This document shows positions 1 to 59,630 of a DNA stretch of 64,000 nucleotides, in pieces (position 1 is the stretch's first letter; the number at the start of each line of letters is the position of its first letter). The DNA comes from Orbicella franksi (lineage: Eukaryota), in the NCBI GenBank assembly GCA_964199315.1, contig OZ116711.1, positions 21,390,001 through 21,454,000 of the forward strand, read 5' to 3'. Made by a program: the position numbers and the translations under genes. Below the pieces are notes generated by a model. It saw only the letters and a program-made list of their open reading frames with translations. It was not told the origin of the DNA and ran no database searches.

Positions 1-3000
1 CATCACAAAGCATGCAAGACTCGGACTGCAAGTGTAATAGTCGGTGGAGTTCACTGAAGAAGAAGCTACGATCCCTCTCGCTGTCATACTTTGCAAGACA
101 TTACTATGGTCCATGGTTGCAAAAAATGCCAGTCAAGGTGACAAATATGACTGCTAAATTTGATATTCAAATTATTCATCAGGCAAGGGTTGTTAAATAT
201 CGTTGGTCACTGATAAATCTTGATTTAAAAGCAAAACCCTTTTCAATTATAGCTTGATGTTATTTACTGCTAGTCAGAGTAGAAAATGATATCCTGAGCT
301 ACAATGGAAAATAGCAGGATCTTTACTGTTTACTGTAGATACATGTATAATATTGAATTCAAAGCACATGCTATATTAGGTTAGTGCGGTAAGGGTGTAA
401 CAGATATGAACTGCTTAGAATACATGTAGGCTGCTTATCCTTTCTGTCACTGAAAATATGTTTAACACAGTGGCAATTCCAGAACTACATGTACTCAAGA
501 TGTAATTTATTTCACTTAATTGTTGTTTTTTCTTTTTCTTTCAGATTTCAGTCTTATTCATGTTTGCATGTCTGTTTGCTGCTGGTGTCTATGGCTGTAT
601 GAAAGTGGAAGAAGGTTTGGACCTAACTGATGTAGTCCCACGAACAAGTCCAGAACACGAGTTTGTCAAAGCACAATCAAAATACTTCTCTTTTTACCCG
701 ATGGCTGTCGTGACCAAAGGAGGCTATGACTATCCTAATGGACAGGAGCTCTTGTACAAGTTTCATGATACATTCAAGAAGGTAAAGCCCTGATCTCAAC
801 ATACAGATTCCCTTTAACAGTACAGACTCATTTCTTCTAATAGAAACCTAGTAGGTGCTTCACTCTGAAGTGTGAAATACTGCAAGGTATTTATTAACCT
901 CCCATTAGTGAGACATCTGTACCTTCACTGATTGCCCTCACCTAAGTTATTGTTAAAGTAACAATTCTGTGTACCCAGTGCGAAGTGCATTGCTCAAGAA
1001 CACACCAGAATGACACTGAAGTCCAGTCCAGAAACTGTATGAGCACCTCATCTCTTGTGTGCTGTGTAACTGAAGTAAAGTGAACTTGTAACTTGTTTTA
1101 AGCTTGATTCTAATCTAACTTGCAGATTCCCAACATAATAAAAACACCTGAGGGGGAATTGCCACCTTTCTGGTTGATGTATTTCAGGGACTGGCTTATA
1201 GGTATGTTACAGATGTGCATTAATTGCATCATATACTCAGGCATAAAATGTATTGTCGTACAGTCTGCATGTGGAGGGCTGGAAAGCACTTTTCACCTAG
1301 AGAACTGGTTAAAGGTATCCAATGATATCGTCTACATTATGTATATTTCTGGTTTGTTATACATGTATCTGACATATACATGTATGCTTGCAAGTAATCA
1401 GTCTTAGGTACAGTGAGCAAAATATTTGGAACAAATCCACCATGTTGATAAAATTAGAAACGCATGTACCAGTGACAGGGTAAAAAAAAAAAATGTGGAC
1501 CAGTAGAGCTATTCAGTGTAATGAAAATTTTCAGAGTTGGGAGTGTAATGGCTGATTGAATCTATTACAGTAACTGTAACATTGTGTAAAAGTAATGCTT
1601 ATTGTTTCAGAGCTGCAAAAAGCATTTGACAGAGACTGGGCTGAGGGGAGAATTTCATATGATGGGTGGCAGAAAAATGCATCTGATAATGGTGTGATGG
1701 CCTACAAGCTGTTAGCACAGACTGGAGAAAAAGAGACAATCAACAGATCCATAGTATGTGTTGAAAAATAAATTGTACTGAAAGGTTGCATTTTTCACTC
1801 AAGGCTAAGGTCTAAGTAGGGTTTTCACAAAGTTGTTAAACTGTAGGTGGCACTATTGCTGGGTTAGGCCGCTGATTTTGCCATCTCTAAATTTTTTAAA
1901 GAATCTAATGAATAGCTCAGGAGAGAAGCGGCTGTTGCCAGCCAGCAGCTGGCAACATTTGACAACTCAGTCATGCCAGCTGACTAGATTTCGGACTTAC
2001 ACTTGGCTTATTGTTAAAGTGAGTTTAGTGTTTTGAGGAGGTTTAACTATCTTCCTTCATGCCAGAACGCCCTGTTTTGCAAATTTATTCTACCATGAAC
2101 TTTGGAAAGTGATTACTTCCCTAAAGTAGCCGTAGAAAAAGATGGCTTAATAAATAAGGACCCTCATTACTTGCAGAACTGTGTGGCACGGGAGTAATAA
2201 AAACCATGAGACTCAATTAGTTTACTCCTTGTCAATCAACAGGTTCGTAGTGTAAGGTTGGTTGATGATGAAGGAATTATCCGCCCAGAGACCTTTTACA
2301 AGTATTTGATGGTTTGGTTCAATGTGGACTTTATGGGATATACCATGTCGCAGGTTTGTGAACTCAAATTACATCATGATGTGTGCCACAAGTAAACATC
2401 TTGTGTTACATGCTCAACTTTTCTTCAATGCAGATAAATGCAAGATTATTCCTAAAAATGTTACATTGATCAACATAGCTTGAAAGAGATCCTAGCTTGG
2501 AAGAGATGCATTGAGTGTGCGATCAGTTGTTACTTGGTGCTTCTATTGACTATCGTGTTTACCGGGTAACTGCCAATATGACAGCTACATGGATCTTGAT
2601 AAACCTAAATGTGTATCTTCAATTTGAAGGTTTTTTAAGGCCATTTCTCTTACGTAGGGAAAGCAGTGAAAAAAAAGGATAAAAGTGAGAGATTAATTTG
2701 GCAAAAGCTACATTGTAGCATGGGCCTCCCTCACTGTTCAGACCAGTGACAATGTTTGTAAACCTTTGTGTAATAGAGTTCTGCTCTTAATTCATTTAAC
2801 CCAGGCAAACATCAAGCCAGAACCAGAGGAATCATGGTTTAACACAAGAAGACACCAAGAATACAACGCCATGCGAGGTATGTTGTGATTAAATTCGTTC
2901 TTGGTAAAACCCAGGCCAAATTTGAACCACATCATGTACATAAACTGAAATAAATTCTGTGTTGTCACTGGTGTAGATGTACCGTAGTTAAGTTTACTGA

Positions 3001-6000
3001 TAACTTGTGTTTTCTTTTTCCTTTCAAAACAGTTGAGCCACCAGCACCGCCTTCAAACTTCACTTATATTCCATTTAACCTGATCAACCTTAGGACTACA
3101 AAGGACTTTGTTGAAACAATCAAGGTATTAACAATTATTTATGTAGTAAAAATAATTTTTTTTGCCAAGTTACATAGCATGTAGGCAAATAACAGAAAGG
3201 GGGTTTACTGAAATGGAAGGTGCTGACAGGTACTGGAAAACTCAATTAGCTGCAAGACACATTTAGTGCAACTTATCAGCAATGTCTTTATATTGGAGGC
3301 TTCACTTCAAAATAGTTATAAGTTTTGTAATGCTACATTGTACATGTAGGTGTGACAGGTAAGTTGCTGCATATTTGATTCCCACTTGTCTCCCAAATCA
3401 GAATGGCAACTGATAATCAAGGAGCCTAGGTTGTCAAGCGGAATTAAAATTTTGCTTTGTTGTTTGCAGAGTGTCCGCACCATATGTGAAGAGTTTTCAG
3501 CGGCTGGCCTGCCTAATTACCCAAGTGGTATCCCATTTATATTTTGGGAACAGTACATTTGGTTGGGGGAACATCTCTTGGTTGCTGTCGCGATTGTGCT
3601 GTCAGCAAGTTTTGTGGTCATGGCTGTTATTCTTTGCAATTTCTGGGCAGCGATGTTGATAGTAAGTGTGTAACATAACGAAATTTAAAATAGTACTATC
3701 GTTTCTCAAAATGATGTTTTAATTATTGTAATTCATGTGACTCATGTACTTTGAATAGATGAACTTGCTTCTTTCTAGCACTGATAAAAATACAAGTAAG
3801 CTATTTCCAATGAAAAAATATGGAAAGGTTTCTCGAAGTTGTAGTTATTGTTTCAGAAGTTTTCTCTTTTCAACAAGTGTTAAGGTGGCTAAGTGTATTT
3901 CTGGGCTCAGAGAATTTTTCTGTGAAACTGAAAAATTGTAAAGTTATAAGTAGAGTGATCATGAATGAGATGTTTGTTTTTTTGATCGCATAGGTTATTG
4001 TCCTGGTAATGATAACAGTGGAAGTGTATGGCTTTATGGGTCTGGCTGGTATAAAACTTAGTGCCGTGCCTGCAGTTACACTCATTCTGTCTGTTGGAGT
4101 TGGTGTGGAATTCACTGTACACATGTGTATGGTATGTTGTACATGGATATGTTAAGATTAATTTTTCTTGAAGTGAAACGTGAGAACAAGGGCCTTACCC
4201 TTGGAATAAAAATATTAAGAACATTAATTCATTGGCAATCAGGTTGTGTGCATATGCATTATAAATCCATATTGTTTGCGAGGAATTTAAAAATCAAAGT
4301 GTTAGGTCCGCTGAAAATGTCCAACTATCATGTATATAGGATAGATGAATTTTAATTGAAAATTTTAGTTTTATCATGTTTTTGCATAACCCCATCAGTT
4401 ATTGAGCTTTGATTTTAATCGTGCTTAAATAAAGGTTGTCTGTTTATGTGTCTGTCTGTCAGTCAAAAGCTTATTATAACATAACTAAAGCAAAGCGCGC
4501 GCTCTGATTGGTTAATTTAGCGTCTACTATTTGCCCATGGGTGTACGCTGCTGACGTGTGTGCTAATGTTTACAAAGCAAATCTTTTGACAGACATTGTT
4601 TCCAAAGTAATGGTCGACGTCGTTCTGCCAGAAATGCGAAACTGTCTTCACAGTTGTTTGAAGATGAAACTTTATCGAGTTACTGGTGTGCAGTCGGTTG
4701 TCATGAATGAATTTTCGCGCGCTTGTTTTCTCTTGTCATGTAAGACTACACGAACATTTTTTTATGATGTAGCTCAATAAAAGGACTTCTGTTGTTCCAA
4801 TGTCTCAATGTTATGTTATAAAACAAATGGTAAACGCCATAGCGTGCACTATTGAGTTATGGATGCACTTGGGAGGTTTGCTAAGCACTCAGGAAGCTAG
4901 AGTCGCAGGAGGCGATAGCCGAGTGCGACTCTTACGCTTCTTTCGTGCTTAGCAACCTCCCGCGTGCATCCATAACTCAATGGTGCACGCTATGGCGTTT
5001 ACCATTTGTTAATTTTACAATAACTGTCTAATTTCTCGCGCGCTGATTGGCTCATTTTTATCATCAATTAGAGTACAGACGGATAAAATTTTAATTTATG
5101 CTAGCTTTCAAGTTCAACTGTCAGCTGTCAAACTGTCAAAATGTTTCACAGTATTTTTTAGTTCAGTTAAACAGTTGGTGGATTTATGGTTGAACGTGTA
5201 AACACAGTCGTGATCCTAAATAGTTTGCTTTCGTTCCATATTCTTTTCTTTTAACTTACCTGTTTGCATTTTCTCTCCTTTTTCTTTCAGCAATTTTTGA
5301 CGAGTGCAGGCGACAGAAATCAGCGAATGCAGAGAGCTGTCGAACATGTGTTTTCTCCCGTTGTGGACGGTGCCATGTCGACCTTACTCGGTGTCATTAT
5401 GCTTGCGGGGTCAGACTTCGATTTTATCGTCAGGTACGGTTATTAGAGAAAAGAATCGTGAAAAAACTTATGCAATAAAAACAAGAACTTGCAGCTTTTT
5501 CGCTTTACGCTTTCAAAAATGGCGGAAAATTGGTAACTAGGCTTTAACTCCCATCATGCTTCACGAAGCTAAGGACCCGCTTTTCCCGGCAAAAATTTAG
5601 GGACCGGAGCGGGCAACTTTGGAAGTAGGCAAATTTCCTAGGAAAGCTTCCAGAAAGTCCGAAAATTTTCAACTAACAATAGGCTTTACTAACGGAACGT
5701 CATTTACTGATTTACTTATTACAGGTATTTCTTTCATCTGCTGGCTGCACTGATTGTGATTGGAACTGTAAATGGTCTTGTGTTTTTGCCAGTGCTGTTG
5801 TCTCTCGCTGGGCCTGGACCCGAGGTAGGTTTCCCTTCAATTTTCCAGTGAACCATAACTCGTTCTTACGAGCGGATGAATGAAACTGAAGACATAGCTT
5901 CTCGTTAATTTTACAGTCGTCATTTTGTCCCCAGACGCAAAGAATACTGTTATTATTTTTGTTTGTCTCGTCAATACCTTAAATCTGGAAATGCTGATTT

Positions 6001-6531
6001 TCTACGGCTGGGATATAACGTCAATAACGCAAGACAGTCAAACAACTTCGTTTTGTTCTCTGTTTTGTTTTAAAGGTTGAAGAAATGCTTCCTCCAGGAA
6101 CAGCCTCTTCTGCCGGGTCAAACAGAGAATTGTTTCCCAGCTCTACTTGTAGACAGAGAACCCCTCCTGCGGATTCCGAGGTTTGTATCCTGGAGAGAAT
6201 CGCCAGAGAAGAGGAAAGGTCATCTGGTTCCGGGAGGAGACGTACTCGCCATAAGAGGGGTCCTCACAAGAGTAACAGCCGGAGTAACAGACGTGCAAAT
6301 CGAAGCAGGTCTCCCCCGGTCGATTCGGATTCGTCAAGTTCGACCGTGACTCGGGTAACGGCTCGTGCTACGGTCACGGTCGAAGTGCATACCGAACAAG
6401 TCTCCACCGAAAGAGCGGCGTATCAGAATTTCCGAGGTGGAGCACAAGTTGGGCCGATTCATAACCAAGGGGAGATAGACGAGGAGGATTTGCACGTCAC
6501 GAATTTGGAGTGCGATGGCATAAGAAGATAG
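1..6531 (+). CDS. PTCH1: Patched paralog A (canonical Patched, PTCH1-like), 3' half; 5' part lies upstream of the window
   Basis: Manually spliced GT-AG exons: <1-137, 545-781, 1126-1201, 1611-1753, 2243-2353, 2805-2877, 3033-3124, 3470-3661, 3994-4131, 5291-5433, 5725-5824, 6076-6531 (TAG). Phases are compatible throughout. Motifs include [88 protein letters not shown]. The 138/143/100-nt exons match the sizes of human PTCH1 exons 19-21 as I recall them. Confidence 0.95.
4822..5010. repeat. Long palindromic (foldback) element in gene A intron
   Basis: ~85-nt inverted arms (AACAAATGGTAAACGCCATAGCGTGCAC... / ...GTGCACGCTATGGCGTTTACCATTTGTT) around the loop GGAGGCGATAGCCGAG. Confidence 0.9.
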
Positions 6532-34800: not shown

Positions 34801-34801
34801 C

Positions 34802-37184: not shown

Positions 37185-38309
37185 TTAAGTCGGAAATTTT
37201 CAAACGCTCTTTTTCGAGAACTGGAGCGATATTATGGAATCAAATTTCTCAAGACTGAAGAGATTTATCTAAACCAATCTTTAAGAAAAAAATTCGTAGA
37301 TTTTTATTTGAGACTCTTTCAGACAGGGATGACTATGTTGAAGTAGTCGACACCCTGACTCAAGTTCTTAAATTTAGTTCCTGATTAATTTCAACCCATA
37401 GTTTAGTTTATCTCTAGTAAATCATAGCTCCTAGTGTCAATCAAAATATGTAAATGTACTTGTATTAAACGGTTTCGTAAATCCTGCTATAAGTAGTTGC
37501 ATAGCAATCTTATTTATGTATTAATGGTCTAATATAAATATAGATGTGGCCCGCCTAGATTAGCCCAGACTACCTGCGGGTTCGCGCTGTTGCTATTGTC
37601 AAGCTTTTTTAACTTAATGAGTATATATTTTTGTAAAATTGTAAATATGCCAGTCATAATAAAGTGTTGTTGTAAGTGTTGTTGTTGTTGTTGTAAATAA
37701 TTCGACCATTGAGTTACATTTACCCGTTGAGGCGAAAGAAAAGCTTGCAATCATATTGTTCGATCAGTGGATTTAGATTTCCTTGCTTTAATGCTATTTG
37801 ATATGACCGTTGATGACACGTTGCGTGACGGCTCCAGTTTCGGTAAACTCGCAAATTCATGCTATTAAAACGTCTCATTTTCACTTTTACTGGTAATGTT
37901 TAAGCACAGAGGCTAATTTTTAAAAAGAAAACTTGTGGAAATACATCTACTAAGGGTTTCCTGGGTCTCTTAAACCAAGTTCTGGCATTTGTTACGTTCT
38001 TTTCTTAACTCAAGAAAAAAATTTGGGGGCTCTATTGTTGGAAAAATAGAATTCTCTTTTAAAAACCTAGACCAACCCCAATTATACCGTTTATTTCAAT
38101 TCGTATTATCAGTATTTCCTTCAAGCTCTGACGCCAACACCCACTTTCACATTGAAACTCCTAGTATAAATTAATTCTCAAAAATACGCGCGAATCTAAA
38201 ACGTCACAACCGTGTTTACCTACTCTCATCTAAACACACATATCGACCAATGAGAGCGCGCGTTGTAACTCAGTGATATTATAAACACCAATATTTTCGT
38301 GTTTTTCAG

Positions 38310-40915: not shown

Positions 40916-40977
<62 letters not shown>

Positions 40978-46900: not shown

Positions 46901-49900
46901 TTGAGGTCGCTTTCTTTACAGGTTTGTGTAGATTAAAGAAACAAATATGAAAAGCAATCATGATCTCACAGCTGACGTTACCAACCAGTATAGTTTGTTT
47001 ATAAAAGCTGTGACAAGGCAAATTTGCTCAGGGTTTTTTCTGGGGCATGCTTTAGCTAGCTGTCACGTTGTTTTTGACAGACTCACTATGCACCCGAGAC
47101 TAGTTCAGCAAATACAGTTGTCTTTGCAACAAAATGGAAATTTAGTGACATACAAAAGAAGATTGGCTAAGAAAATAATAGAACCAACAACAGAAACAAT
47201 AAACCGGGCTCTTAGGTAGCGTTCCCACTACGACAGAGAAATTTGAAAACGCCGTTGTATTTCTACGGTTAGGCGTACTGTCTACACTAATCCGTCACGA
47301 GAACGGAGCTTTTCGAAAATGCTCTTCAAGCCCCAGGAATTTGAAAACGCCGGCTTTTCGCTTTCGTGTGGCACGGAAAACATTTTGAAAACGGAGCATT
47401 CCGAAAATGGCGTCACGATAATCGGGGTTTCCTCGACCGAGTTTACCTCAGACACAAATCCTAAAAGACCGGTGATTGTTGCGTTTTTAAATTCCTCCGG
47501 CGTAGTGTGGACGGAAAGCATTTGATGCGTTTTCAGAGTAAAACCTCCGATTTTAAACTCCTCCGGTGTAGTGTGGACGAGGCCTTAAAACAAAAGAAGT
47601 AGGTACATACACTGAGAGAGCGAATGAAATTGTAGGTTTTGAAGAGGTGCGCGGCTTCTGAATACAGTAACATTGTATGACAGTAACATTGTATGACAAT
47701 TGATTTTCTCTCAATCTTTTTCTTTCTCTTTAGCTTGCTATTGTGGTTGTGTTCAACTGTCTTGCCGTAATTGTGATCTTCCCTTCAATGATTGCGATCG
47801 ACAAAAACAGAAGAAGTCGCGGCTATGACCTGCTTTGCTGTTGCAAAAGGTACAACTTGTGGGTTCACTTAAACTCGAGTGATTTAACCGGCAATCATGC
47901 TCTCCCATCCAAAATAGCCACCAAACGATGTTGCCTCCTTTGAACAACTTTCCGTGGAAGAAAAAGGTGACAGAGATTTCTCAGAGGCGGCAATTTGTTC
48001 TCAATTACTATTGATGCGTGTTCCGATAATTTGGATGGCTCTGTATTCTTGCGGGAGTGGTGAAACTGTTATATAACGTAATTATGTAATATGTTTTATA
48101 TAATAACCCAAGTTATTCTTGCATTTTGATTGGTTCTCGCCTATGATCTATTAGAGGACAGACGCACGATTGACGTCATCATTTCAAAGTTTTTCCCTCT
48201 GTGTTTTAAAATGGCGGAAAGTTTTGAGAATTTAGATAATATTTTACACGACTGGGCAAAAGATAAGGTACAAGAAGGTCTTGTCCAGGCATTAAACAAG
48301 TACTAGAAGCATAGTCTAGCAGGAAGAAGAAAGATAAAGCCGTTTCTGTTTTATAAAATGACTCGGAAAAAATACTCGAGCAGTTTCAGTCGGCAGTCGA
48401 GCGAGACTAAACCAAACACAAAATTGGTCTCTTGGTGGGCCGAGAACCATTGCTTTGTCTCGACCCAGTAAACAAAATGTTTATGAGATTCATTTATTTA
48501 AAACAGTGAGCTTTTCTCAGTCTCAAAATAACTGTTGACACAGTGATTGTCTGGAATGAAACATCAAAACCACTTCAGTGAAAATAAACACATAACCTTG
48601 CTTTCCGATGCGAATGTTCCGGTCCGTTTCAGGATACAGCAGCGAGCAAAGTATAGCTCACTACAGCTCACGGCCAACTGTATCGCAGCTAAAAGGTGTC
48701 TCCGACACTATTTCACACTAATTTGAGAATCACCAACCACAGAGGACACAAATTTCCACCATCACTAACGTTCCTTTCATTCAAAACTCGAATCGAATGG
48801 CCTCCAGATTGACCACAACCGCAAGTTTTCCGAGCGTAGTTTTTCAACTCCTGCAATATTCGAAGCAACATCCAAGCTTTTCGACTCACAGGGCTGCTCT
48901 GATGACAAAACCTGACTTGACTTATCCATGATTTTCTTTAAGATTTGTAGATTTCGCAGTTCAATTCTGCTTTCGCTGTAAGTTTTCATTCCACGAGAAG
49001 CGACGCTCGAGTCAAGTTTGACAGTGGCGTGATTTTCCTGGACCAATCAAAATTCTTTGCTACGCATAGCAACCAATGAGATTGCTTCAATTTGTATAGA
49101 CAATAGATTACGTCAAATGGCTTTTTCGTGTTCGCCAAAGTGGGCAGAGGCCGGCTTTTTGTTCTTACCACATTTTGACGTCATCTGTGATCTATTACTG
49201 AACAGACGCACGGCAACATGGAATCTATTTGTTAATATAATATGTTGAATAATATTCTCATATTTTGATTGGTTCTTACTTATGATCAACTGGAGGACAG
49301 ACGCATAGATTACGTCATAACAATTTATCCCTTTATTATATAATACAAATAGATTTCATGTTGCCGTGCGTCTGTTAAGAAATTGATCACAGAAGTCGTC
49401 AAGATGTGGTAGGAACATTGATGACACACTCGGCTATCGCCCCATGTGCCACTTTTTTGTTCTTATTACCACAATTTGACGTCTTCTGTGATCACTTACT
49501 GAACAAACGCACAGCAACATGGAATCTATTTGTTAGTATTTCTCCTTTCTTTTTCTTTTTCCTGCTACAGAAACACAAGAATTGAATCTCTAGACCCGAG
49601 AAGTTCAAGAACATCAGAAAGTGATAGTAGTTTCCTACAGGTGAAGAATCGGTACCGACCTAGTCCTCCATCGGAACATAATTCCAGTGACTCTGTCATA
49701 ATCCCGGGAAATGTCGAGGCAACTGCTTTAAAGACAGTACATTCCTCGAGTGTGGTAACATTTGAGGTATCTGCAGCGTCCGAGTGGAGCCTTCACAAGG
49801 CACCTCGTTCCAGGAGAGACAGGCAAATTGAAGATCCAAGTGACCTTGAATTACCAGCTGTGGGTAGTATTCCCAACAGTGGTGGAGTAGACACTTCCAA

Positions 49901-52900
49901 AAGCGGGGCGGGCGCTTTAGCAAATGTTACGGAAACTCAGACAGAAATAGAACAAGGCAGGCGAGATCCTGGCAACACAAGACTTTGTTATCAAAGCCAA
50001 AGGACTACAAGGTCTTCAAAAATTTACCCCGAACAAAGTGCGAGTGGAAATAATTTTTGTAAACAATCAGAAGCTTGGACTGAGGGAAGACATAACAGTC
50101 ATGGCTGCACGAGTCGTCCAGCCACTGCCGTAGGTTCATCATCCCGAGATGACAGAGACGCGCGGACCCAGCAGTCCACTGATGCGCCAAAGAAGGTTAC
50201 GTTTACGTTACTGGCTAAACCTGCTTCAGCAGGAAAAACTGCTGTGGTTATGGATGATGCTTCTTCCTTGAGAACATTAAGTTCACACTCGAGATCGTCG
50301 CCAGGCGTGGAGTCAATGAGCAGGGTTTCTACATCACAAAGCATGCAAGAGTGTGACTCAGAGTCTGAATGCTGGTGCAGTTTTCTTAAGACAAAGCTTC
50401 AATGGCTCTCACTGGCATACTTTGCAAGACGTTACTATGGTGTGTGGTTGCAAAAAATGCCTGTCAAGGTAAACCAGGTCTACCCTTATTCGTAACAGGA
50501 ATTTGAAGTAACCACGACAGTGACCCACCTCGCCGATCCTCGATTTTACCTACGAATCTCACGATACTCTTAAGTCATTTAGCTTGTTTCTCTTTGTCAA
50601 AGTTATCTCGAAACTGAATATAGAGCTGAGGACAGTAGCGTTCAATTGAGAAAATGAAATTTCAAAGATTAGCCGTCGTGGTTCACGTTCTCCAGAGAAC
50701 GCAGAACTTTGTCATTTCACGTTGTTGTTTTGCAGAGGACGGCAAAGAAATGTACCAAGAAATATAACGCAAGTGCACAACCATTTTCCTTAGAATCGTT
50801 AACATGACGAGCAATAACAAAGAACATATTTCTCTTTTCCAGGTTGTTGTGATAATATTTTTCCTCAGTCTCCTCGCCGTTGGAATTTACGGCGCACTCC
50901 AAGTTGAAAGTGGCCTAGACCTCACAGATGTTGTACCAAGAAAAGGCGTGGAATACAAATTTGTCGAGGCTAGGCTCAAATATTTTTCGTTTTATCCAGT
51001 GGCGCTCGTTACACAAGACTTCGACTACGCTAATCAGCAGAAGAAATTGTTGTCCTACTATAATGAGTTTAAAAACGTAAGTGGTTAGAAATGTTATGGC
51101 CAGAGAAATTTAAAAACGGCGTTTTCATTCTGAAAACGCATCAAATGTTTTCCGTCCACACTACGCCGGAGAAATTTGAAAACGCAACTATCACGGGTCA
51201 TTTTGGATTTCTGTTTGAGGAAAACTCAGACGGCCGGGGAAATCACATGATGTCATCGTTTTCGAAAAGCTCCGGTTTCAAAATGTTCTCAGTCCACACT
51301 AAAAACGCTGGCGTTCTCAGATTCCTCCGGATTGAAGAGCGTTTTCGAAAAGCTCTGTTTTCGTGACGGATTAGTGTGCTCCCTTTTCAAATTTCGTAGT
51401 GTGGACTGGGCCGCACTGTTGTATAGAGTAGGTAGGGTATTGTCGAAAGAAGCAACAAGTTTTTCTTTTCCGTTTCTTGTCACCAGATTTTCAATACAAC
51501 TGGAATTCCAGGCTCAAAAGAAAGTCCCAAGTTTTGGTTGACGTCCTTTAGAGAATGGCTAAATGGTAAGGGATGTAAAATGAACTAGAAACAGTTGACA
51601 CTACAGTTGCCCCGCTGTGAAGAACAGGTCTGATAAGCCTCAGAAATGTAATTTTCGCTGATAATGACCATAATATTAATCTGGCAATCAGGTTAGCTGA
51701 ACATCTTTGACGACTGTGTACTGTGGATTTCTTTTGTGCTTCCAACTGACTTGTCATGTAAGCTAAGTCTGCATACAAGCCAAGTGGCCCATCATACCAG
51801 CGCTTATCCCGGCTTCTGTAGCATGAAGCGACTAGGACTATTTCTGCTTCCCCCTGGATCGAATGTTAGTCCATCGCAAGGTTACCGCCAGCATTAAATT
51901 GGCCCTTACCCATTTATATACCTGGGTGGAGAGAGGCATTGTGAGAGTTAAGTGTCTTGCCCAAGAACACATCGCTACGTTCCCGACCAGGGGTCGAACC
52001 CGGACCGCTTGATCCGGAAGCGAGCGCACTAACCATCAGCTAAAATTTGGTTCGTCATACGCTGTGTCTATTTGTTCGTTTTTGTTAGGGAGATTTTGCT
52101 TTCGCGTGGCCGAAAGTCCTTAATTTTATGCGTTCATTTCTGTTCGAGAGCGTTTCGCGAGTGTATGCATGATTTCGAAACTATTATACAGTGGATTTTG
52201 TGCCCTTTCCTTTTATGTATACTGGTTGTTGAGTTAAAGTTCAGTGCTGCTCCGGGACGACACTAGACATCAAATTACGTTTGTTGTGCGTTTTTTATTT
52301 GTCTCAATAGAGATGGGTAGCTTGTTCAAACCAAGGGGAAAAGCGCTGATCGTTCCCAAATGTTTACATTCGCTTACTCCTTTATTCTGCTTAGTACACA
52401 AAAGAATAACTAGCCAGTGATTCCGGGAATTTCTAGTCCGTGGGGGGCTCCGGTATGAAAAGGACGGGGTGGGGGGCTCGTCGGAAATTTTGAAAAGAAC
52501 CCCTCCGAGTTACCTAAATCCTGTCTTGTGGTGTGGTTGAAATGTTTTTCACCTCTAAGAGTACCAATTCTAAAACAACACATAACCTCCTGTCATACGT
52601 TTTTCGGCTTAACACCCTTGAAGATTCTGCAAAGGCTCCCGCCGTGGGCCTTTTGAGGCTGAACACGCTGAGAGGTATCAGAACTGCTTTTTTAATCCCT
52701 GAAAGGCACGCCGAGAACCCCCGTCCTCTTTATAAGGGAGTCCCTGCACCTCCCCTCCCCCCCCCCCCCCGCTCGGATATCTAGGCTAGGTCATTATCAC
52801 TGGATTATTCCGCGCCCGCTCTGTTCAGACAGCATCAAGATTTTTTAGTAACAATATTTGTTGTCTATGTAGATACTCAAGTATCATTTGATCAGGACTG

Positions 52901-55900
52901 GGCCAATAATTCTATCACATACGCCGGCTGGTACGACAATGCGACGAGCACTGGTGTTATTGCCTACAAATTACTCTCACAGAATGACAACTCAGACAAA
53001 ATTGATAAATCAAAGGTAGGCACCGACGGCTGAATTTTAACCTATGGGTAGGGGGTTTGAGTAACAACATAGTACAAGTAGGAGTTGTCTCCGCCCAACG
53101 GGGACACCCGTATGAAAAGGTCAGTGATGTCTGTCGTCTCGCTTAGGGATATAAATCAAGGATTCTGGTCTTACCTTGGGTGTTCATGACGAAACCCCAC
53201 TACTTTTAGCCGAGATAGGTGTCATTCAGGGTTTAATTCAAATTTTCCGAAGAGCATCCCCGACCGGGAGTTCCCCCGGGGGTGCCCGCCCGACGCGCTG
53301 CACGCACCACCCCGACTCACTCCCTACAGTCCCTCCTCGAGTGTCTGCTACGTAAACTGCAGAATTTTTTCGGCATTCTGAAAGCAACCTCGGCAAATTA
53401 TGACAGGAAACAAGAGAAGATGTAGAGTAAGAGAGTTCATTCCCCATATAGGCATTATTCTTAAGGGAAACCGTCTCAAGTTATTTCTAGATATGGTTTG
53501 TAGTTCTCTCGACGATGTATTGCGTGGATGTTTCGTGGAGGATAAAACTCCACGCGTGTAAAATTCACGTCAAAGGATTGGCTAATTCTAATAGTAATCT
53601 AAAAATAACTTGAGAGGCATCACCTTAGGAATGAGTCCTTTATGGGGGACTAATTCGCTTACTCTTCATGCTCTCTTGCAGGAAACCATTACGAAGTGCG
53701 AAAGAATGATTATGGCCGAGATGGTAATAACTTCAAGGATGGGCAAACTTAAGCCTACACTACGCCGCAGGAATTTTAAAACGCAGCTTTATTTCTACGG
53801 TTAGGCCTACCGTCGATACTAATCCGTCACAAAAACGGAGCTTCTCGTGACAATCTTCAAACCGGAGAAATTTGAAAACGCCGGCCTTGTGTTTTATTGT
53901 GGACAGGAAACATTTTGAAAACACAAATCTAAAATGACCGTTGATTGTTACTTTTTTAATTCCTACGGCGTACTGTGGACGGAAAACATTTGATGCGTTT
54001 TCAGAGTGAAAACTCCGTTTTCAAATTCCTCCAGCGTAGGTGGACGGGGCCTGGAACACTGAGGCGCCTTGCAATGAGTTTGATTGAATGTTTTTCACAA
54101 TGAACTGTAACCTTGGTGATCAATTATGGGTGTATTTGTGCTTTACAGGTTCGAAACTATAAACTTGTCAGCGATGATGGAATTATTCGTCCAGAAATAT
54201 TTTACAAAGCTCTGACAACTTGGACCAATGAAGACTTCTTGGGGTACCAATTCTCACAAGTATGTTATAAAAGCAACGTATTTTAAACACAGTTTTGTCG
54301 TAACACTCGAAGGAAGCGAGCCATCAGTTAGTTGTGTTAAGACCATATCTGTAATCCTGTACTGTGACAAGTTAATACGTGCATTTCGATAACGTAATAT
54401 CCGTGTATTTCTTGCAGGCCGTCATCAAACCAAAGACAGTCAACTGGACAAACATCAAAAACAAACAAAATGACAAGGCAATGAAAGGTAATTTTCCATG
54501 CCAGTTTCTTCGTTTTTTTTTTTTTTTTAATTAACACTGAACTATATGACTTTGTTACCGAACCAGTCTCCTTTCCAGACTTCCTATTTTCGATACCGTG
54601 GCGTCATGACAATCTTCTCTTATTCTCTCCACGCCATAGAGTGTAAACGGTGAGAAAAGTAAAGGATTGTGGGGAATAACTGCATACCAGAAATGAAAGA
54701 GAAACTGTCAGTTAACATTAGTAAAAATTAGCGTGGTTGTAGACACAACGTAGAGCCTGTAAACTGAATTATAGCCAAAGGAACTGAAGTAATCTGAAAA
54801 TGAAACACTTTAAAAGAATATTTTTTAGGCCTTACGCTCGTTCTTTTTCAGTGCCTAGTGCCAAACCAATCACATTTGCGAATATCAACTTTAATGTTAT
54901 TGGCCTTAACGAAACCAAGGATTTTGTGAAACTGATTGAGGTGAGTTCGCGTGCTTTCATGGAATTTGACTAATTTAAAAGAATCAAGCAATCCAATAAC
55001 GAAGCGCGCGAAGTCTAAAAAGAGAATGCAAATTAAACGCGGGAGCCCCGCGAGAGCCAGACAACATAAGCGTGTTCTGAGAGAAATATGGGAAAATGAA
55101 CGCAAAATTTTCGTTTTAAAAATTGTTTTAGGAACACTTGCTTACGCGCTTGAAAAAGCGTCAAATTTTCCATCATTCCGTTTTGTTTGTCTGAGTTTGT
55201 CTGAGTTATGACGTCACTCGCGCGCTTCGCTATTCTGTTTTATTTTCGTGAACGTCAAAAACCGTTTAGTTAATATCGCGCACCAAAGTTTCTTCTTTCT
55301 AAGGGAAGATTCTACGACATTGTAGCACCATGTAATTTAGAACTGTGGATTATTAGGTAAAATTTCTCCACCGCTTTTGAAGCCAACTCGTAATATCTAT
55401 GACTAGTCCATACGGATATGGTTGCGATTATATAGGCATTGAAAATAAAACCGTTTAAGCCAAAAAAGTTTTGTAATTATGTAAGAAAATGAGACAGAAA
55501 TATAATTCGCGGAAGTAAATCACTTTTAAGCGCGAAACCCTCGCACATGGTTTTTGGCAACGCTTCAGTTAAAGGCTGTCAAAGTAATCGATGAATCGAA
55601 TTATACACCCACCTTTGTTGTCTGCCAAATAGTCTTTAATTTGGAAGCACTTGTTCGACTCTAAACGCGAAAGATCAGTCCATCACTTTGGCAGCCATTT
55701 CAAAATTTTTACTCATGAACGACTGTTGTTCAATCATCGCTTTCATCTTCCCAGGCCGTTCGAAAGATCTGTGACAAGTACTCAGACGACGGATTACCCA
55801 ACTACCCTAGTGGTGTGCCCTTCACGTTTTGGGAGCAGTACATCTGGCTGAGAAGGCAAATGTTGATCGCGATTTCTATTTCATTGGCGGTGAGCTTCGT

Positions 55901-58900
55901 TGTCACGGTGATCATTCTGTTCAACATCCGGGCAGCTGCTGTTATTGTTCTTGTCCCGACAATGATCATAGTGGAAGTGTATGGCTTTATGGGTCTCGCT
56001 GGTATAAAAGTCAGTGCTTTTCCCGCAGTTAGAGTTATTTTGTTCGTTGGAGTCGGTATGGAATTCACTGTACACATGTCTATGGTAAGTTGTCTTTATC
56101 TTGTGATAACAATTTTTTCGATCGGATCGTTCAAAATGAGACGTTTATAGGCTTAGGAGAAAACCGAAACTACAACACTTTTTTGTTACAGTTACGCGAT
56201 CTGAGACTGGAACCGAAAACTCTACAGAGATCCGTGGCGACTGGTTGCTGTTGAGCGGGGAAACATCCAACCTGTGCCTAACGCAAGAAAACAAGCAACG
56301 TGTGCTAAGCGCGGGAAAAACATGCAACGCGTCCTAAGCGCCGAAAAACATGCCACGTGTGCTTAGCGCGGGAAAACGTTCCCAGACCAAGCCACGATTA
56401 TTTAGAGCGATTTTCAATTACGTGTCGTAAAACCAAAATCAAACCAAATACTTACCAATTAGATTACTCAGCTAATCTCAAACCGTAATAAAACCAAAAC
56501 CAAAACCAAAGTAATTGCCTGATTACTTTCGACATTCAATTGAAAACTGCTCAAAGCTTTGCGCCTAATTGGTTTAAAGTGCACTTAACCCCAAAAATTT
56601 TTTTTCGCTAAAATAATAAAGCTTATTTTGTGGAGTAATTTGCCGCAAAAATCTTGCGATTTGGTTAAATCCTCGAATTTCTGTGCCCTCTCGAAACCGA
56701 GTTTCGAATGGTTCGCGACCGCGCTTGGGGAATCTGGAGAGAGTTAAAGCTGTGACGTCAAGTCCAGAACGAATCTTCGGCTGTCCCAATCAGGTCTTTT
56801 ACTTTGTCCGAGTGTAGCAGCCTTGGGTTATGTTTTCTTTGCCACTGCTTAGAGAGCTTTGCAAGCATTTGTAGATACATGTAGCAACTAGTCTGTAACG
56901 TCTTTAAGTCAGTCTTTACCCAGTACCATAAAATGACCAAGTCCTTCACTTTGCAGGCATTTTTCCACGCCCTTGGTGACAGAAACCAAAGAATGCAAAA
57001 GGCAATAGAACACGCTTTTGCTCCGATTGTGAATGGTGCTATTTCTTCTTTACTAAGTGTTGTGGTACTAGCAGGATCCCAATTCTATTTTGTATTCAGG
57101 TAAGAGAGGTTACCAAGCCGGATTTTCTCAGTAACATATTTTATAATGACACTTAAAAGATAATTCCAACCGTTGTTGTTTCTTTATGTTGATTGTTTGA
57201 GAAAGACGCAGCAAATGGCTTAATGGCCGGTTAAGTACGTTAGTAGAGAAGTTCTCTTCAGTAAAGACTATGTAAAGAGAATTCCTTGCCATATTAAAGC
57301 GTTTTTAGGGCTATTTCTCTCGCTCACTTTTCGCTTCTCGATTCGAAAGATCTTTGAGCATTGGTATTGACCGACCATACTCTGTACCATTATTTTTGTG
57401 CTGATTCGTTGGGTTACTGTATCCGCTCTCCTGACACTCGTGTAAAATAAATTCCATAACCTTCTGCAAATCCTCAACTCTTCACCTCACAGTGGACCCC
57501 GCCTTAACTCCACCTCGTTATGACAGTCACTTTATTCTGGCCCGAACAAAAGCTCAGTCAGTAATTTGCTTATTTAAAACACTCCTTTAAACACCCGCTA
57601 ATATGACCCGATTTTTGTAGCCCGTTGGTGACCGGATTAACGGTATTCCACTGTATGATATGTAACTTAAGGATCGTCCCTTTAAAGACTTTTTAATGTA
57701 TTTCTTTCGTAGATACTTTTTTATCCTCCATGTGGCGTTGATACTGATCAGCACATTAAATGGCGTGGTGTTTTTACCTGTTGTTCTGTCCTTAGCCGGT
57801 CCAGGGCCAGTGGTAAGTCGTAATAATTAATCATTGAGGGAAACATGTTAAGAAGAACGAATTACTGGCGTGATTTTCCAAAATCAAGACACTGGTCATA
57901 CAGTGCGGTAACCTCTCTTCACCGAAGAGTTTCGAAACGTTCGTTTTAGAAAGCCGCTGTGCGAGGTGAGTGCAGGCACAAAGTTAACCTTGCGCCTGCA
58001 CTCATATCGCTCAGCAGATTCTCCCTATCCGAAAAACCCCTTTGAGCCTCTGCGGAATGGAGAGTGCAAATTGCTGCTAGGTCGTTGCACGAGCCTGAAG
58101 TCTGGAAACTACTTAATTAAATGAAATCAGCAAACGAAATATCAATCATACACTTTAAGTCCAAATCCTTTTCAAGACGTAAAATTCTCCACCTTAAGGG
58201 GGTCTTATACTCTCAGATATAAATTTTTCTCCAAAAAACCATTTTTTTGGAACATGAAGATTCAACATCCCTGTCCATTTGTAAATCGTATTTTGAAACG
58301 ATTTTCCTCTAATTACTCCTGAATTTACGTTTAAATTAAGAAATCTGAACACTTCTAGCTATATTTCAACATAGCAACACCCATAGCAACCATTGTTTAC
58401 AGTCTAAAAGTACTCACAAAATGGATTCAATTCAGTACATTTTAATGATACTTTACACAAACGCTTTAAAAATGTGTAGTTATGAGATTTTTGCATCATG
58501 GTCCTGAACATTGTGTCTTCTACCATCTTATACGCTCCTTATACTTGGTTAACATTTCTATGACTGGTGTGTATTCGGGTGTTCAATGAAACATTTATGT
58601 AAAACCTTTAAATATACCCCTCCCCCTGCCCCTAACCTCCCCCCCCCCTAGTTCACAGGGCTAATTTGGGCTCTCGGAGACCGAAGTAAAACTTTAAAAC
58701 CTTATTTCTCAAAATGACCAAATAGACGGATCATCAATATCTCGCACACGATATCTCCACTGGGTTTTAACCGAATGTTGTCAAATTTTCAACATTGATG
58801 AAGGACACAATTATCTAGGTCTTAAACCTCCAAAATTTGCAATTTATGAAAATTTTCCCTGTTATTTAGTTAATATAGTTAATATTACTTAATATTAGTA

Positions 58901-59630
58901 TACTTTTTCAACATTTCACGAGAAAAACCCCTTCAAAACACTGTTTTCTGAGGTTTGTCTCCTGGACAACTTGCTTATGGACAGGATGAACTTAATTCCA
59001 TACTTCTCGAACCATTCATTAACACGTTATCGTGTTTATAATGAACACCACTTTTTAACACTTAGGAGCTAGTTATTCATTAACTATCGTGGCACGTGAC
59101 CTGGAAAAGCTCATTTTTGAAGTCAGAGTGCAAAGTCCTTTAACGTGATACCAAAACTGTTCCACAGAGTTGTTTTGCAAAAAAAAAAAAATTTTTAGGT
59201 GTAAGACCACCTTAATCCTAACAAGAAATACACTTTGTAATGAATATAAACAATGAAGGTATTTGGTACCACAAACTTACGCATGCCGTCTAAACACAAT
59301 CAAGTTGTGACTTTTATTTGTAATTTTATATTTGTTTTGGTTTGTGTCTATCTTTGCTAGATAACAGAAATCCGTACGCCGGCCATCGTCTCAAATACGC
59401 TCGCTATTCAAAACCCTTCTGCGGTTAGGTATGTTTATAATGAACCGGAACCAGAAGAAATCGAATTGCACGCTGTTAAAGAGGTAAACAATAAGTCAAA
59501 TGATCATGGAGTCGATCTGGAAAGAACCAACGGAAATGGGGCCAAAGTGGAGTTATCCGATAATGAACCGAGGAGCTCAGACATGACGACGGGCGACGAG
59601 CCTCGCCCATGTGTACTGGCTTGGACGTGA
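38310..59630 (+). CDS. PTCH1: Patched paralog C (divergent PTCH1-like), 24 exons in one open frame; first exon/start not located
   Basis: Exons: 38310-38502, 39688-39877, 40370-40424, 41240-41334, 41964-42078, 42515-42607, 42925-43043, 43430-43592, 44281-44412, 44868-44996, 46186-46272, 46796-46921, 47734-47849, 49571-50468, 50843-51076, 51487-51565, 52873-53015, 54149-54259, 54418-54487, 54852-54940, 55755-56084, 56957-57099, 57713-57812, 59361-59630. Total 4080 nt, with no internal stop or frameshift found. The first exon seen (193 nt, [17 protein letters not shown]...) corresponds to PTCH1 exon 2. An in-frame ATG at 38382 is a possible start. Confidence 0.9.
39161..39545 (-). mobile_element. 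MITE family 1 copy (gene C intron)
   Basis: Reverse-orientation copy of 22701-23089. Confidence 0.8.
40880..41143 (-). mobile_element. tRNA-derived SINE (family B)
   Basis: Minus strand reads GGAGGCAGCGTGGCCGAATGG (A box) ... GAGTTCAAATCC (B box), with a T-rich tail; related copy at 35963-36178. Confidence 0.75.
42200..42415 (+). repeat. Dispersed palindromic repeat (TTTGACCACATTTCCAAA family)
   Basis: Near-identical copy at ~43985-44180 and a reverse copy at ~13625-13795. Confidence 0.8.
45289..45590 (+). mobile_element. tRNA-derived SINE (family A), full length
   Basis: tRNA-like head with A box TGGCCTCATGG and B box GGTTCGAGCTC; central CC(T)GGCCAAGACACTT and GTAACCCTGTGATGGACTAG-CATCCCATCCAGGGG blocks; 3' GGGCCACTTGGCCCGTATGCAGACTT. 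Other copies: 51762-52040 (-), ~43700-43890 (+), ~21815-21900 (-), ~63340-63500 (-). Confidence 0.85.
47214..47585 (+). mobile_element. MITE family 1 copy (gene C intron)
   Basis: Near full-length copy ending GTGGACGAGGCCT followed by TAA. Confidence 0.85.
48070..49535. mobile_element. Composite/nested non-autonomous elements ending in a palindrome that abuts a gene C acceptor
   Basis: Repeated block TTTTGATTGGTTCT...TATGATC...GAGGACAGACGCA at ~48125 and ~49263; repeated arm TGTGATC...CTGAACA(G/A)ACGCAC(G/A)GCAACATGGAATCTATTTGTTA at ~49185 and ~49487; palindrome 49345-49533. Confidence 0.7.
51095..51412 (-). mobile_element. MITE family 1 copy, internally deleted (gene C intron)
   Basis: Alignable to 22701-23089 in reverse orientation. 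Confidence 0.8.
51762..52040 (-). mobile_element. tRNA-derived SINE (family A), near full length
   Basis: Reverse complement of the 45289-45590 element. Confidence 0.85.
53748..54052 (+). mobile_element. MITE family 1 copy, internally deleted (gene C intron)
   Basis: Both TIRs are recognisable; central part is shortened. Confidence 0.8.
58198..59211. mobile_element. Non-autonomous Kolobok-like DNA transposon with TTAA target-site duplication (last intron of gene C)
   Basis: TTAA at 58194-58197 and 59212-59215; TIRs GGGGGTCTTATAC / GTGTAAGACCACC. Purine-purine termini fit Kolobok better than piggyBac. No transposase ORF. Confidence 0.75.

Follow-up and report, generated by a model that had tools for sequence, protein, structure and literature searches.

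A chimeric third gene without the canonical TM4 motif in a tandem Patched array of the stony coral Orbicella franksi

The receptor Patched has two roles, binding of Hedgehog and repression of Smoothened by means of cation-driven sterol transport, which have so far been separated with engineered mutants. One ptc gene per non-vertebrate genome is the usual picture, and the two vertebrate genes, PTCH1 and PTCH2, are unlinked, having arisen via whole-genome duplication. Residues D513, D514 and E1095 of PTCH1 make up a conserved cation site, and the D513Y protein is inactive and does not repress signalling (PMC10446486); the Drosophila allele ptc-S2 is D584N, an Asp-to-Asn replacement within the sterol-sensing domain (PMC4362464); and ligand sequestration is a known activity of Ptc apart from transport (PMC5014547). 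The Patched family has also multiplied in particular lineages, as in the ptc/ptr expansion of C. elegans, where nematode ptc-3 is reported to need an intact permease domain (PMC3078328). Among cnidarians, the sea anemone Nematostella has a working Hedgehog pathway, and a study of its ptc gene considered that a paralogue missing from the annotation might act redundantly with it (PMC7515634).

The locus described here occupies a window of 64,000 nucleotides (positions 21,390,001 to 21,454,000 of contig OZ116711.1, assembly GCA_964199315.1). Self-comparison of the open reading frames of the window and its flanks revealed three colinear exon series, corresponding to three intron-rich PTCH1-type genes (A, B and C; Table 1) in tandem on the plus strand, and each series was mapped from TM1 to TM12 by tblastn with full-length Patched or PTCH1-like proteins. 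In models curated by hand from tblastn chains with splice refinement, every intron is GT-AG and no frame is interrupted in any of the three genes, which bears out the three co-oriented, intron-containing PTCH-type genes that a sequence-only reading of this DNA had described. The Pfam Patched model matches exons in A, B and C, the families PF12349, PF02460 and PF27572 occur in their nearest relatives in the databases, and PTCH1, their best solved relative, aligns with all three end to end (12 TM segments and two large extracellular domains). The same reading had favoured PTCH over NPC1, and B exon 21 indeed matches PTCH1 chains at 3e-36, NPC1 at 7e-10 and Dispatched at about 1e-3; A, B and C are the only Ptc-type loci in the genome, the next-best sterol-sensing-domain loci being just 25% identical. 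In trees from a 'quick' search, with PTCHD and NPC1 sequences left out, the three genes fall inside a cnidarian Ptc clade whose sister group is bilaterian Ptc; by alignment and phylogeny, A, B and C are true Ptc-type genes. Haplotype duplication, which had been discounted from intron content, is likewise contradicted by saturated synonymous sites between A and B, by a dS of about 0.6 for A-C and B-C, by introns that are alignable for just tens of bases past the exon edges, by an extra intron in A and by the absence of one exon from C.

Table 1. Features of the three Patched genes (window coordinates; negative values lie upstream of the window)
Feature	Position	Strand	Details
Gene A, canonical long Patched	from 14-21 kb before the window to the stop at 6531	+	26 coding exons, 1479 aa
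A exons 1-14	-14435..-1055, upstream of window	+	curated model
A first exon 1b	-14435 (alternative exon 1a: about -20685)	+	both upstream of window
A exons in window	exon 15 end ..137; exons 16-26: 545-781, 1126-1201, 1611-1753, 2243-2353, 2805-2877, 3033-3124, 3470-3661, 3994-4131, 5291-5433, 5725-5824, 6076-6531 (stop)	+	tblastn chains and splice refinement
A exon 23	3994-4131	+	TM10 GVGVEF
Gene B, short Patched paralogue	10621-28822	+	24 exons, 1212 aa
B exons	10621-10804, 12873-13083, 13385-13454, 14487-14590, 15219-15324, 16164-16256, 16804-16922, 17398-17545, 17970-18101, 18655-18813, 19228-19326, 19956-20081, 20573-20691, 21319-21700, 22422-22658, 23226-23304, 23765-23907, 24479-24589, 25218-25287, 25381-25469, 25913-26242, 26785-26927, 27828-27927, 28538-28822	+	all introns GT-AG
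B exon 11	19228-19326	+	TM4 GLGVDD intact (translation, alignment)
B exon 21	25913-26242	+	TM8-TM10, GVGVEF; one exon in B and C, intron-split in A
Gene C, chimeric Patched paralogue	33407-59630 (59630 = stop codon, and the last position of the interval in the sequence-only reading)	+	24 exons, 1351 aa, no internal stop
C exons	33407-33469, 38307-38502, 39688-39877, 40370-40454, 41240-41329, 42515-42607, 42925-43043, 43430-43592, 44281-44412, 44868-44996, 46186-46272, 46796-46921, 47734-47849, 49571-50468, 50843-51076, 51487-51565, 52873-53015, 54149-54259, 54418-54487, 54852-54940, 55755-56084, 56957-57099, 57713-57812, 59361-59630	+	23 introns, all GT-AG
C first coding exon	33407-33469	+	homologue of A exon 1b (tblastn, coral A-type N-terminus)
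C exon 10	44868-44996	+	in-frame 30-nt (10-residue) deletion in TM2-TM3 loop of sterol-sensing domain; donor site conserved
C exon 11	46186-46272	+	degenerate TM4 motif LSLGVND
C exon 14	49571-50468	+	middle cytoplasmic loop, last A-derived; 65% nt identity to A vs 43% to B
C intron with A/B switch point	50469-50842	+	removed as a GT..AG intron in X25 and X29 RNA contigs
C exon 15	50843-51076	+	TM7 and start of ECD2, first B-derived; 83% nt identity to B vs 58% to A
C exon 21	55755-56084	+	TM8-TM10; GVGMEF keeps TM10 Glu; Pro, Arg replacements within helices

The product of gene A contains no internal stop, is 75% identical to the Pocillopora A-type protein P0159, and is the long form with both GLGVDD and GVGVEF, in agreement with its earlier description as the canonical receptor. 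Gene B is short in its N-terminus, middle loop and tail and retains all transporter motifs, matching the short-tailed, active-looking receptor previously proposed; its product shares about 70% identity with P0156 (Stylophora 'patched-like 2') and with P0155, and the exonic share of the region 25700-26500 was present in RNA runs. The accompanying statement that A and B keep their transporter motifs within the window and that C does not was correct for both motifs of B, for GVGVEF of A and for the lost TM4 motif of C, but failed for the GLGVDD exon of A, which lies outside the window at -3080..-2994, and for TM10 of C, where the motif is kept as GVGMEF. Gene A alone contains an extra intron (3662-3993), the matching exon being unsplit in B and C. 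A exon 23 is 93% identical to B, as against about 74% for the remaining A-B exons, and base-by-base comparison shows an identical 83-nt tract (A 4018-4100 and B 26129-26211), which together point to local gene conversion with B in that exon.

The A-B pair is found in other corals as well. In Pocillopora meandrina, A is followed by B in tandem on the same strand, with 3.4 kb between them. Public annotations of Stylophora, Acropora and Montipora already include proteins of both types (named 'patched-like 1' or 'patched-like 2', for instance), the two Stylophora types being on contigs both recorded as 219,222 bp and probably one scaffold. Acroporid and pocilloporid sequences appear in both the A clade and the B clade, at 100% SH-aLRT, which indicates that the A/B duplication is ancient and no younger than crown stony corals; the two half-gene trees disagree on where the A/B split falls with respect to sea anemones. 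The earlier suggestion of a lineage-specific cluster consequently fails for the A-B tandem, and the third gene, C, also has counterparts in two other coral assemblies; that reading's own refuting condition, prior annotation of the cluster as an anthozoan-wide feature, applies in part, since existing annotation of the pair extends to stony corals, and not to anthozoans at large. Like vertebrate PTCH1 and PTCH2, A and B are duplicated putative Hedgehog receptors of which one is long-tailed and one compact. Both vertebrate proteins keep GxxxDD, whereas the coral copies are in tandem, were duplicated independently within cnidarians, and are accompanied by a third, chimeric copy without the motif.

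That C is chimeric was established exon by exon: its identity flips at a single intron, exons 1-14 being A-derived and exons 15-24 B-derived, an arrangement that rules out C as a simple third paralogue. Trees of the half-genes place the 5' half of C with A and its 3' half with B. A non-coding flank of about 130 nt, similar to A, was copied along with the first exon (A -14511..-14316 and C 33332-33524 are 72% identical by blastn), and C may carry the regulatory and 5' part of A together with the 3' part of B. The dS values are 0.59-0.67 for A-C and 0.57-0.62 for B-C, which indicates that the two halves of C are equal in age; by comparison, A and Pocillopora A differ by a dS of 1.5-1.7, and four-fold sites group A with C at 59 positions vs 24 and 22 for the alternatives. 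C is dated by these comparisons, and by the orthologues described below, to the interval between the split from Pocilloporidae and the later divergence from two or more other coral taxa.

These observations suggest an origin in two steps, for which the evidence is gene order and equal dS only. An ancient duplication would have produced a long canonical A and a compact B with intact motifs, and much later C would have arisen downstream of B, with A as the source of the promoter-proximal exon and of exons 1-14, and B supplying exons 15-24. The whole A-B pair may have been duplicated, after which a deletion would have fused intron 14 of A' to the matching intron of B'; alternatively, a replication template switch would give an identical product. 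Given the equal synonymous age of the two halves, pair duplication followed by a fusing deletion would be the simplest route. Genes of the haemoglobin Lepore type and hybrid opsin genes resemble C in that one tandem paralogue contributes the 5' part and the adjacent one the 3' part, with a single intronic switch and the frame kept. In an A-B array, in contrast, simple unequal crossing-over would yield either a B5'/A3' hybrid flanked by A and B or a lone A5'/B3' gene, so that an A5'/B3' hybrid located after an intact A-B pair would require a template switch or a further duplication.

C-type loci that are nearest to C in every exon are present in the ENA assemblies ERZ25067546 and ERZ26858540, and together with C they form a clade at 100% support, which indicates that C is common to at least two other coral assemblies and is not private to this one. 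Both loci display the same chimera, the same 10-residue deletion, and a Ser/Asn or Ser/Ser motif (SMGVND and SLGVSD in TM4, as compared with SLGVND in C and the canonical GxGVDD); the sharing of the deletion and the motif changes suggests that these are old and were conserved afterwards. In one case the end of a B orthologue lies 5.6 kb upstream of the C orthologue, giving the same B-then-C order on an independent long contig. The C orthologue that could be modelled across most exons contains no premature stops, and the ERZ25067546 locus, modelled further upstream, is likewise without one exon of extracellular domain 1 (ECD1).

Gene C itself lacks that ECD1 exon, which corresponds to 42 residues. 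Alignment to PTCH1 chains indicates that its TM4 has Ser in place of Gly and Asn in place of the first Asp (G509 and D513 in chain 6oeu_A), such that the canonical GxxxDD is absent; the second Asp, which corresponds to D514, is retained, as is the TM10 Glu. Changes at sites that are invariant in 15 other Ptc proteins number 26 in C, 1 in A and 4 in B, and those of C include W1130R and L1139P. Changes unique to C outnumber those unique to its parent by 159:39 in the 5' half and 85:28 in the 3' half, corresponding to a rate 3-4 times that of the parents, and this excess weighs more heavily on the TM domains (56:8) than on the extracellular ones (74:28; Fisher p=0.03). Omega among the three C orthologues is 0.38-0.40 (0.25-0.43 in TM domains), as compared with 0.09-0.12 between A and Pocillopora A; a rough estimate for the C stem is 0.45-0.97, and may near 1 when the loop exon is included. 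Taken together, these values indicate that constraint on C is relaxed but that purifying selection is real, and that it is tilted away from the membrane core.

The gene is also transcribed. Between 0.83 and 0.99 of the words of C exon 14 are present in 12 or more RNA runs drawn from several studies, and RNA contigs from two studies confirm five consecutive junctions (46272|46796, 46921|47734, 47849|49571, 50468|50843 and 51076|51487), all spliced as modelled when the junctions were checked as the sequence-only reading had advised; the first of these, joining exon 11 to exon 12, is found in RNA contig X29. A raw-read polyA run (X21) contains almost no reads on C exons, suggesting that expression of C may be low or restricted.

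An acidic residue of the TM4 and sterol-sensing core is replaced in PTCH1 D513Y and in Drosophila ptc-S2, and coral C joins them in this respect, D584 of Drosophila matching the Asn of C at least by domain. C differs from both in that it is a natural gene that is conserved across taxa, and in that it displays in addition a Gly-to-Ser replacement, the loss of 10 loop residues and the absence of the ECD1 exon. The coral array resembles the C. elegans ptc/ptr expansion as a lineage-specific multiplication; unlike nematode ptc-3, C is without part of the permease motif, and the coral genes are true Ptc orthologues. On balance, we lean towards a history in which an ancient A/B array was joined late by a chimeric C that would no longer act as a canonical cation-driven sterol pump repressing Smoothened, and that would be kept for a role of its extracellular and cytoplasmic parts. 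The likeliest such roles would be Hedgehog binding and sequestration, or modulation of A or B, and C would be a natural counterpart to engineered motor-dead Patched. The decoy role suggested for C at the outset, here as a putative Hedgehog sink or modulator, is plausible. The more specific proposal, that a long-retained, transport-deficient chimeric Patched is a dedicated Hedgehog sink or dominant modulator of two working receptors, is offered tentatively, and the loss of the ECD1 exon counts against a sink, since ligand binding could suffer. HHIP and other Hedgehog decoys would share with C just this proposed role, their fold being unrelated.

It appears rather unlikely that C remains active in transport and in the repression of Smoothened, perhaps with altered ion coupling or substrate, and that the cluster comprises three differently regulated working receptors. 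Retention of the TM10 Glu and of the Asp that corresponds to D514, and an omega well below 1 in the TM domains, would allow for an altered but working transporter, and the Ser and Asn/Ser replacements are conserved and non-random, as expected of a new working state; nevertheless, replacement of D513 inactivates PTCH1 (D513Y; PMC10446486), both defining GxxxD residues are absent from C, Arg and Pro occur within its TM helices, and the TM core is where constraint is most relaxed. Still less probable is a transcribed duplicate drifting towards a pseudogene without a function of its own. The elevated rate, the changes at otherwise invariant sites, the loss of an exon, of 10 residues and of a catalytic-motif residue, and a stem omega that may near 1 would all fit such decay, but C does not resemble a pseudogene: a 1351-codon frame and 23 canonical GT-AG introns are intact although its own branch has accumulated a dS of about 0.3, orthologues with an omega of about 0.38 share its characteristic deletion and motif changes in two other assemblies, and its RNA is correctly spliced in two studies. 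An assembly artefact (collapsed or duplicated haplotypes, or a misjoin) that created the three copies or the C join is scarcely credible, as nothing favours it beyond the recognised risk posed by tandem paralogues with intronic repeats, and against it stand copies differing by a dS of at least 0.6, RNA contigs from two studies that cross the join of A-like and B-like exons, DNA contigs from another sample that cover the C pieces at single-copy depth, and the same chimera and gene order in another coral.

Since the A-B pair is already in public annotations, only the chimeric C and its history appear to be new, and a full-text literature search found no published description of C. The picture of a single ptc gene is revised for stony corals, which have a conserved A-B tandem and, in some, a chimeric third gene as well, and the presence of A, B and C bears on the interpretation of knockouts and expression studies of the cnidarian Hedgehog pathway. 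A natural paralogue without the key TM4 Asp, kept across taxa, would test what the Patched ectodomain does without the canonical motor, and its position beside two intact paralogues eases comparison. If the proposed role is true, C would be a receptor-derived feedback antagonist with an evolutionary origin separate from that of HHIP or PTCH2 in vertebrates, and would represent a natural split of Patched ligand binding from pumping.

Considered together, the structural and evolutionary evidence supports with high confidence an array of three true Ptc genes: A and B, a pair that is both old and widespread, and C, a younger chimera that is expressed, is conserved and has a degenerate motif. The window was placed at C14:21390001-21454000 of the 497-Mb assembly, and flanking sequence reaching 40 kb before and 10 kb past it was added because its first gene (A) extends beyond the window start; the window sequence was also present in DNA and RNA runs labelled as coral or coral metagenome. 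A six-frame ORF self-comparison revealed three colinear exon series on the + strand, each of which was matched by the Pfam Patched family in a genome scan. Comparison of the ten longest ORFs to Pfam returned a reverse-transcriptase fragment alone, a route that is uninformative for Patched because the exons are too short. Gene models were then assembled using coral proteins as guides, with tblastn segments being chained, junctions refined on GT/AG and frame, and failures hand-checked. The introns are GT..AG in 71 of 71 cases across the A, B and C models, and no in-frame stop is found in any of the three, so that the three co-oriented Patched genes proposed by a sequence-only reading were borne out.

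Coordinates of the Patched genes and associated features (negative values lie upstream of window position 1)
Feature	Position	Strand	Description
Gene A	-14435 to 6531	+	26 coding exons, 1479 aa
Gene A, alternative first exon	near -20685	+	parallels the X1/X2 isoforms of other corals
Inverted repeat, A intron, first copy	-4525..-4116	+	upstream flank (L004)
Inverted repeat, A intron, second copy	4477-4888	-	
A-only intron	3662-3993		
A/B identical tract, A exon 23	4018-4100		TM10 region
A/B identical tract, B exon 21	26129-26211		TM10 region
Gene B	10621-28822	+	24 coding exons, 1212 aa
B exon used as query	25913-26242		
Gene C	33407-59630	+	24 coding exons, 1351 aa
C exons 1-14			nt identity to A 57-93% (minimum in the short, divergent exon 4), to B 43-70%
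C exons 15-24			nt identity to A 35-71%, to B 65-87%
C intron without exon remnant	41330-42514		
C intron containing the switch	50469-50842		
C junctions in RNA contigs	46272|46796, 46921|47734, 47849|49571, 50468|50843, 51076|51487		
Deep-coverage C intronic stretches	47244-47641, 48040-49233, 50627-50825, 51025-51422, 51622-52000		
Related repeat copies	22702-22998, 28190-28411 (B introns); 39129-39528 (C introns); 61522-61785		
ORF string, C intron 1	35165-37346	+	
Reverse-transcriptase ORF in that string	36048-36755		RVT_1, E 3e-13
Related element piece	about -7803..-7579		
Rpb6 (POLR2F) match	65098-65169	-	downstream flank (L003)
Weak Patched-family matches	C12:22577847-22578317; C3:3420444-3420797		inside open frames of 1970 and 1920 aa, respectively

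The assignment of the genes to the PTCH type rather than to NPC1 was likewise upheld, both by their position within Ptc trees and by the B query exon, which matched PTCH1 chains at 3e-36, NPC1 at 7e-10 and Dispatched at about 1e-3. The same exon returned full-length Patched proteins from a representative set of 1.8 billion proteins, and a word-indexed search supplied named coral proteins. When it was used as the query in a whole-genome protein scan, the only Ptc-type loci encountered were these three (the next-best loci being 25% identical), and the array therefore represents the animal's entire Ptc complement. Two weak Patched-family matches on other contigs have no relation to the Ptc cluster. 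The genome's only Rpb6 (POLR2F) family match, a synteny anchor proposed in the sequence-only reading, lies downstream of C just beyond the window end, on the opposite strand. Two inverted repeats in A introns, each some 400 nt long, lie about 9 kb apart on either side of A exons 11-23; their ORFs are 90-96% identical.

That the three genes might reflect an assembly artefact was ruled out by their divergence, their intron differences, an exon missing from C and its single-copy depth. Synonymous divergence (dS) is about 0.6 for both A-C and B-C and is saturated for A-B, while introns can be aligned for just tens of bases past the exons. One intron is present in A at a site where B and C carry a single exon piece of 330 nt. 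The counterpart of A exon 6 and B exon 5 is missing from C, with no remnant in the corresponding C intron, and C is found at single-copy depth in DNA contigs of another sample; the initial exclusion of an assembly haplotype duplication thus stands. The A-only intron was either lost in the B lineage or gained in the A lineage; a matching break in a protein-to-genome alignment suggests that Pocillopora A has it as well.

Comparison with public coral proteins indicated that A is 75% identical to a Pocillopora A-type protein (P0159) and 67-68% identical to acroporid A-type proteins, and that B shares about 70% identity with both Stylophora 'patched-like 2' and P0155. Maximum-likelihood trees, built separately for the 5' and 3' halves, split the sequences into an A-type and a B-type clade. 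Both clades have SH-aLRT support of 100% and both include acroporid (complex) and pocilloporid (robust) corals, such that the A/B duplication is older than crown stony corals. Relative to the split from sea anemones, the two trees order the duplication differently: the 5' tree placed B outside a group of anemones and A (80-83), and the 3' tree placed anemones outside A and B (82; 50 in a later tree). Actinia, Nematostella and two octocorals yielded a single Ptc apiece, which is no evidence that further copies are lacking. In Pocillopora meandrina, a B-type Patched gene of 1218 residues lies 3.4 kb downstream of A on the same strand. The contigs recorded for the Stylophora A- and B-type proteins are equally long (219,222 bp), so that both are probably encoded on one scaffold, and two Montipora foliosa proteins share a recorded contig size of 38,973,035 bp; for Stylophora, Montipora and Acropora, synteny was read from shared recorded contig sizes in protein tables only. 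The sequence-only reading had proposed a lineage-specific cluster, a view contradicted for A and B by the Pocillopora meandrina tandem and by the annotation of A and B proteins in other stony corals: the A-B tandem is a general, already annotated stony-coral feature. Full-text literature searches turned up no publication on Patched paralogues in corals.

The description of B as a short-tailed receptor with intact motifs was confirmed, its tail being about 95 residues in length (versus about 150 in A) and its GLGVDD and GVGVEF motifs being retained. Its loop is also shorter than that of A (about 130 versus about 315 residues), its N-terminus comprises 25 residues, and only 4 private changes fall at sites invariant in other Ptc proteins. 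Exon 23 of A and exon 21 of B have a perfectly identical tract of 83 nt in common; A/B identity across the TM10 exon part is 93%, as compared to about 74% in other A-B exons, in a gene pair whose synonymous sites are elsewhere saturated, which suggests local gene conversion between ancient paralogues. A public 'uncharacterized protein' of Montipora foliosa (P0151, 1897 aa) combines two B-type copies in one fused model (residues 1-906 and 894-1897), each 93-96% identical to P0153. Montipora thus seems to have duplicated B in tandem recently and independently, unless two copies were merged in annotation or assembly.

The third gene, although a true Ptc gene as had been proposed, is not a simple paralogue, since its exons 1-14 are A-like and its exons 15-24 are B-like. 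Trees placed its 5' half beside A and its 3' half beside B. Exon 14 ends in A-like residues, and the next exon, 15, opens with a run of 22 residues identical to B, which locates the switch within the intervening intron. Late gene conversion of half of C was rejected: dS is equivalent for the two halves (0.59-0.67 and 0.57-0.62), and this equal synonymous age argues for a single origin. With dS between A and Pocillopora A (whose codons were mapped per residue from exact-match segments) being 1.5-1.7, C is far younger than the split from Pocilloporidae; at four-fold sites A shared the state of C 59 times, versus 24 and 22 for the alternatives, indicating equal synonymous rates in A and C. A plain unequal crossover was also discarded, since the hybrid expected from it is a B5'/A3' gene lying between A and B, and the observed order is A, B, A5'/B3'. 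The simplest route to C would be either a template switch or a duplication of the A-B pair, after which a deletion fused A' to B'. The first intron of C contains a string of ORFs, including one with a reverse-transcriptase domain, that resembles part of a non-LTR retrotransposon; a piece related to it precedes the window start.

The loop exon of C, which evolves fast, returned as a query fragments 56-72% identical to it (A of this genome being only 46% identical in the same exon), which were traced to genomic loci in two ENA coral assemblies (ERZ25067546 and ERZ26858540). Both loci are nearer to C than to A or B in every covered exon, repeat the A-like-then-B-like pattern, carry C's deletion of 10 residues, and form with C a 100% clade in both half-trees. 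The ERZ25067546 locus has its 90-nt exon directly followed by the 93-nt one, so that the exon for extracellular domain 1 (ECD1) is missing there as in C. Upstream in one of the contigs a B orthologue, whose final exons match B at 88-98% identity, ends 5.6 kb before the first exon of the C orthologue; the B-then-C order is thus shared. An automated model of that C orthologue, in which two junctions and one exon were not cleanly resolved, spans 1335 codons with zero premature stops and a C-terminus as in C. In L011, another coral's contig, the final B-orthologue exons occur twice (367-1868 and 2913-4426, about 2.5 kb apart), with 367-510 and 1108-1224 repeating 2913-3056 and 3654-3770 at equal scores; either part of the gene was duplicated in tandem or the repeat arose in assembly.

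Transcription of C was evident from exon 14, which is almost completely covered in RNA-seq data of several studies (at least 12 runs), and from RNA contigs of two studies containing five junctions of C, to which the junction support extends, that fall exactly on predicted GT..AG sites and match the model. A single RNA contig of 2.4 kb spans exons 12-15, crossing the A/B join. Raw polyA reads of one RNA run (X21) included almost none on C except at repeats. Several intronic stretches of C with summed contig depths in the thousands, in DNA and RNA, are high-copy repeats, and related copies lie in B introns, elsewhere in C introns and downstream of C.

Analyses of substitution demonstrated that C has accumulated more private changes than either parent (159 versus 39 in A for the 5' half, with a Pocillopora outgroup; 85 versus 28 in B for the 3' half, with a Stylophora outgroup). 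Omega among the three C orthologues is 0.38-0.40, as compared to 0.09-0.12 for A versus Pocillopora A; by domain, the C clade gives 0.23-0.31 for the extracellular regions, 0.25-0.43 for the TM bundles, 0.55-0.58 for the loop and about 0.8 for the tail. The ratio of C to parental private changes is 56:8 in TM domains versus 74:28 in extracellular domains (Fisher p=0.03), so that relaxation is greatest in those parts that show the strongest conservation in canonical Patched. Partitioning by an approximate clock yielded omega values of 0.45-0.97 for the C stem and 0.29-0.44 for later branches, which shows relaxation on the stem; positive selection was considered and was not demonstrable.

The loss of transporter motifs proposed for C was supported for TM4. 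In exon 11 the positions equivalent to PTCH1 G509 and D513 (numbering of 6e1h_A / 6oeu_A) are replaced by Ser and Asn, while D514 and the TM10 Glu are retained; the corresponding TM4 sequences of the orthologues are SMGVND and SLGVSD. The conserved cation site consists of D513, D514 and E1095, and D513Y is unable to repress signalling (PMC10446486). The TM helices of C also contain Arg and Pro, the Arg being common to an orthologue. Neither the large loop exon of C nor A exon 6 gave a Patched match in PDB sequence searches, and they are therefore not placeable on PTCH1 numbering by sequence; PPxY turnover motifs are absent from A, B and C. That C is an altered but working transporter, with part of the cation site kept and part replaced, appears unlikely. 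Slow decay of C is improbable. Ligand sequestration is a recognised activity of Patched that is separate from transport (PMC5014547), and a specific function of C as a Hedgehog sink or modulator may be put forward tentatively. Most likely, C is no longer a canonical repressor of the pump type and has been kept for a role dependent on its ectodomain or loop, of which such a sink or modulator would be one example.
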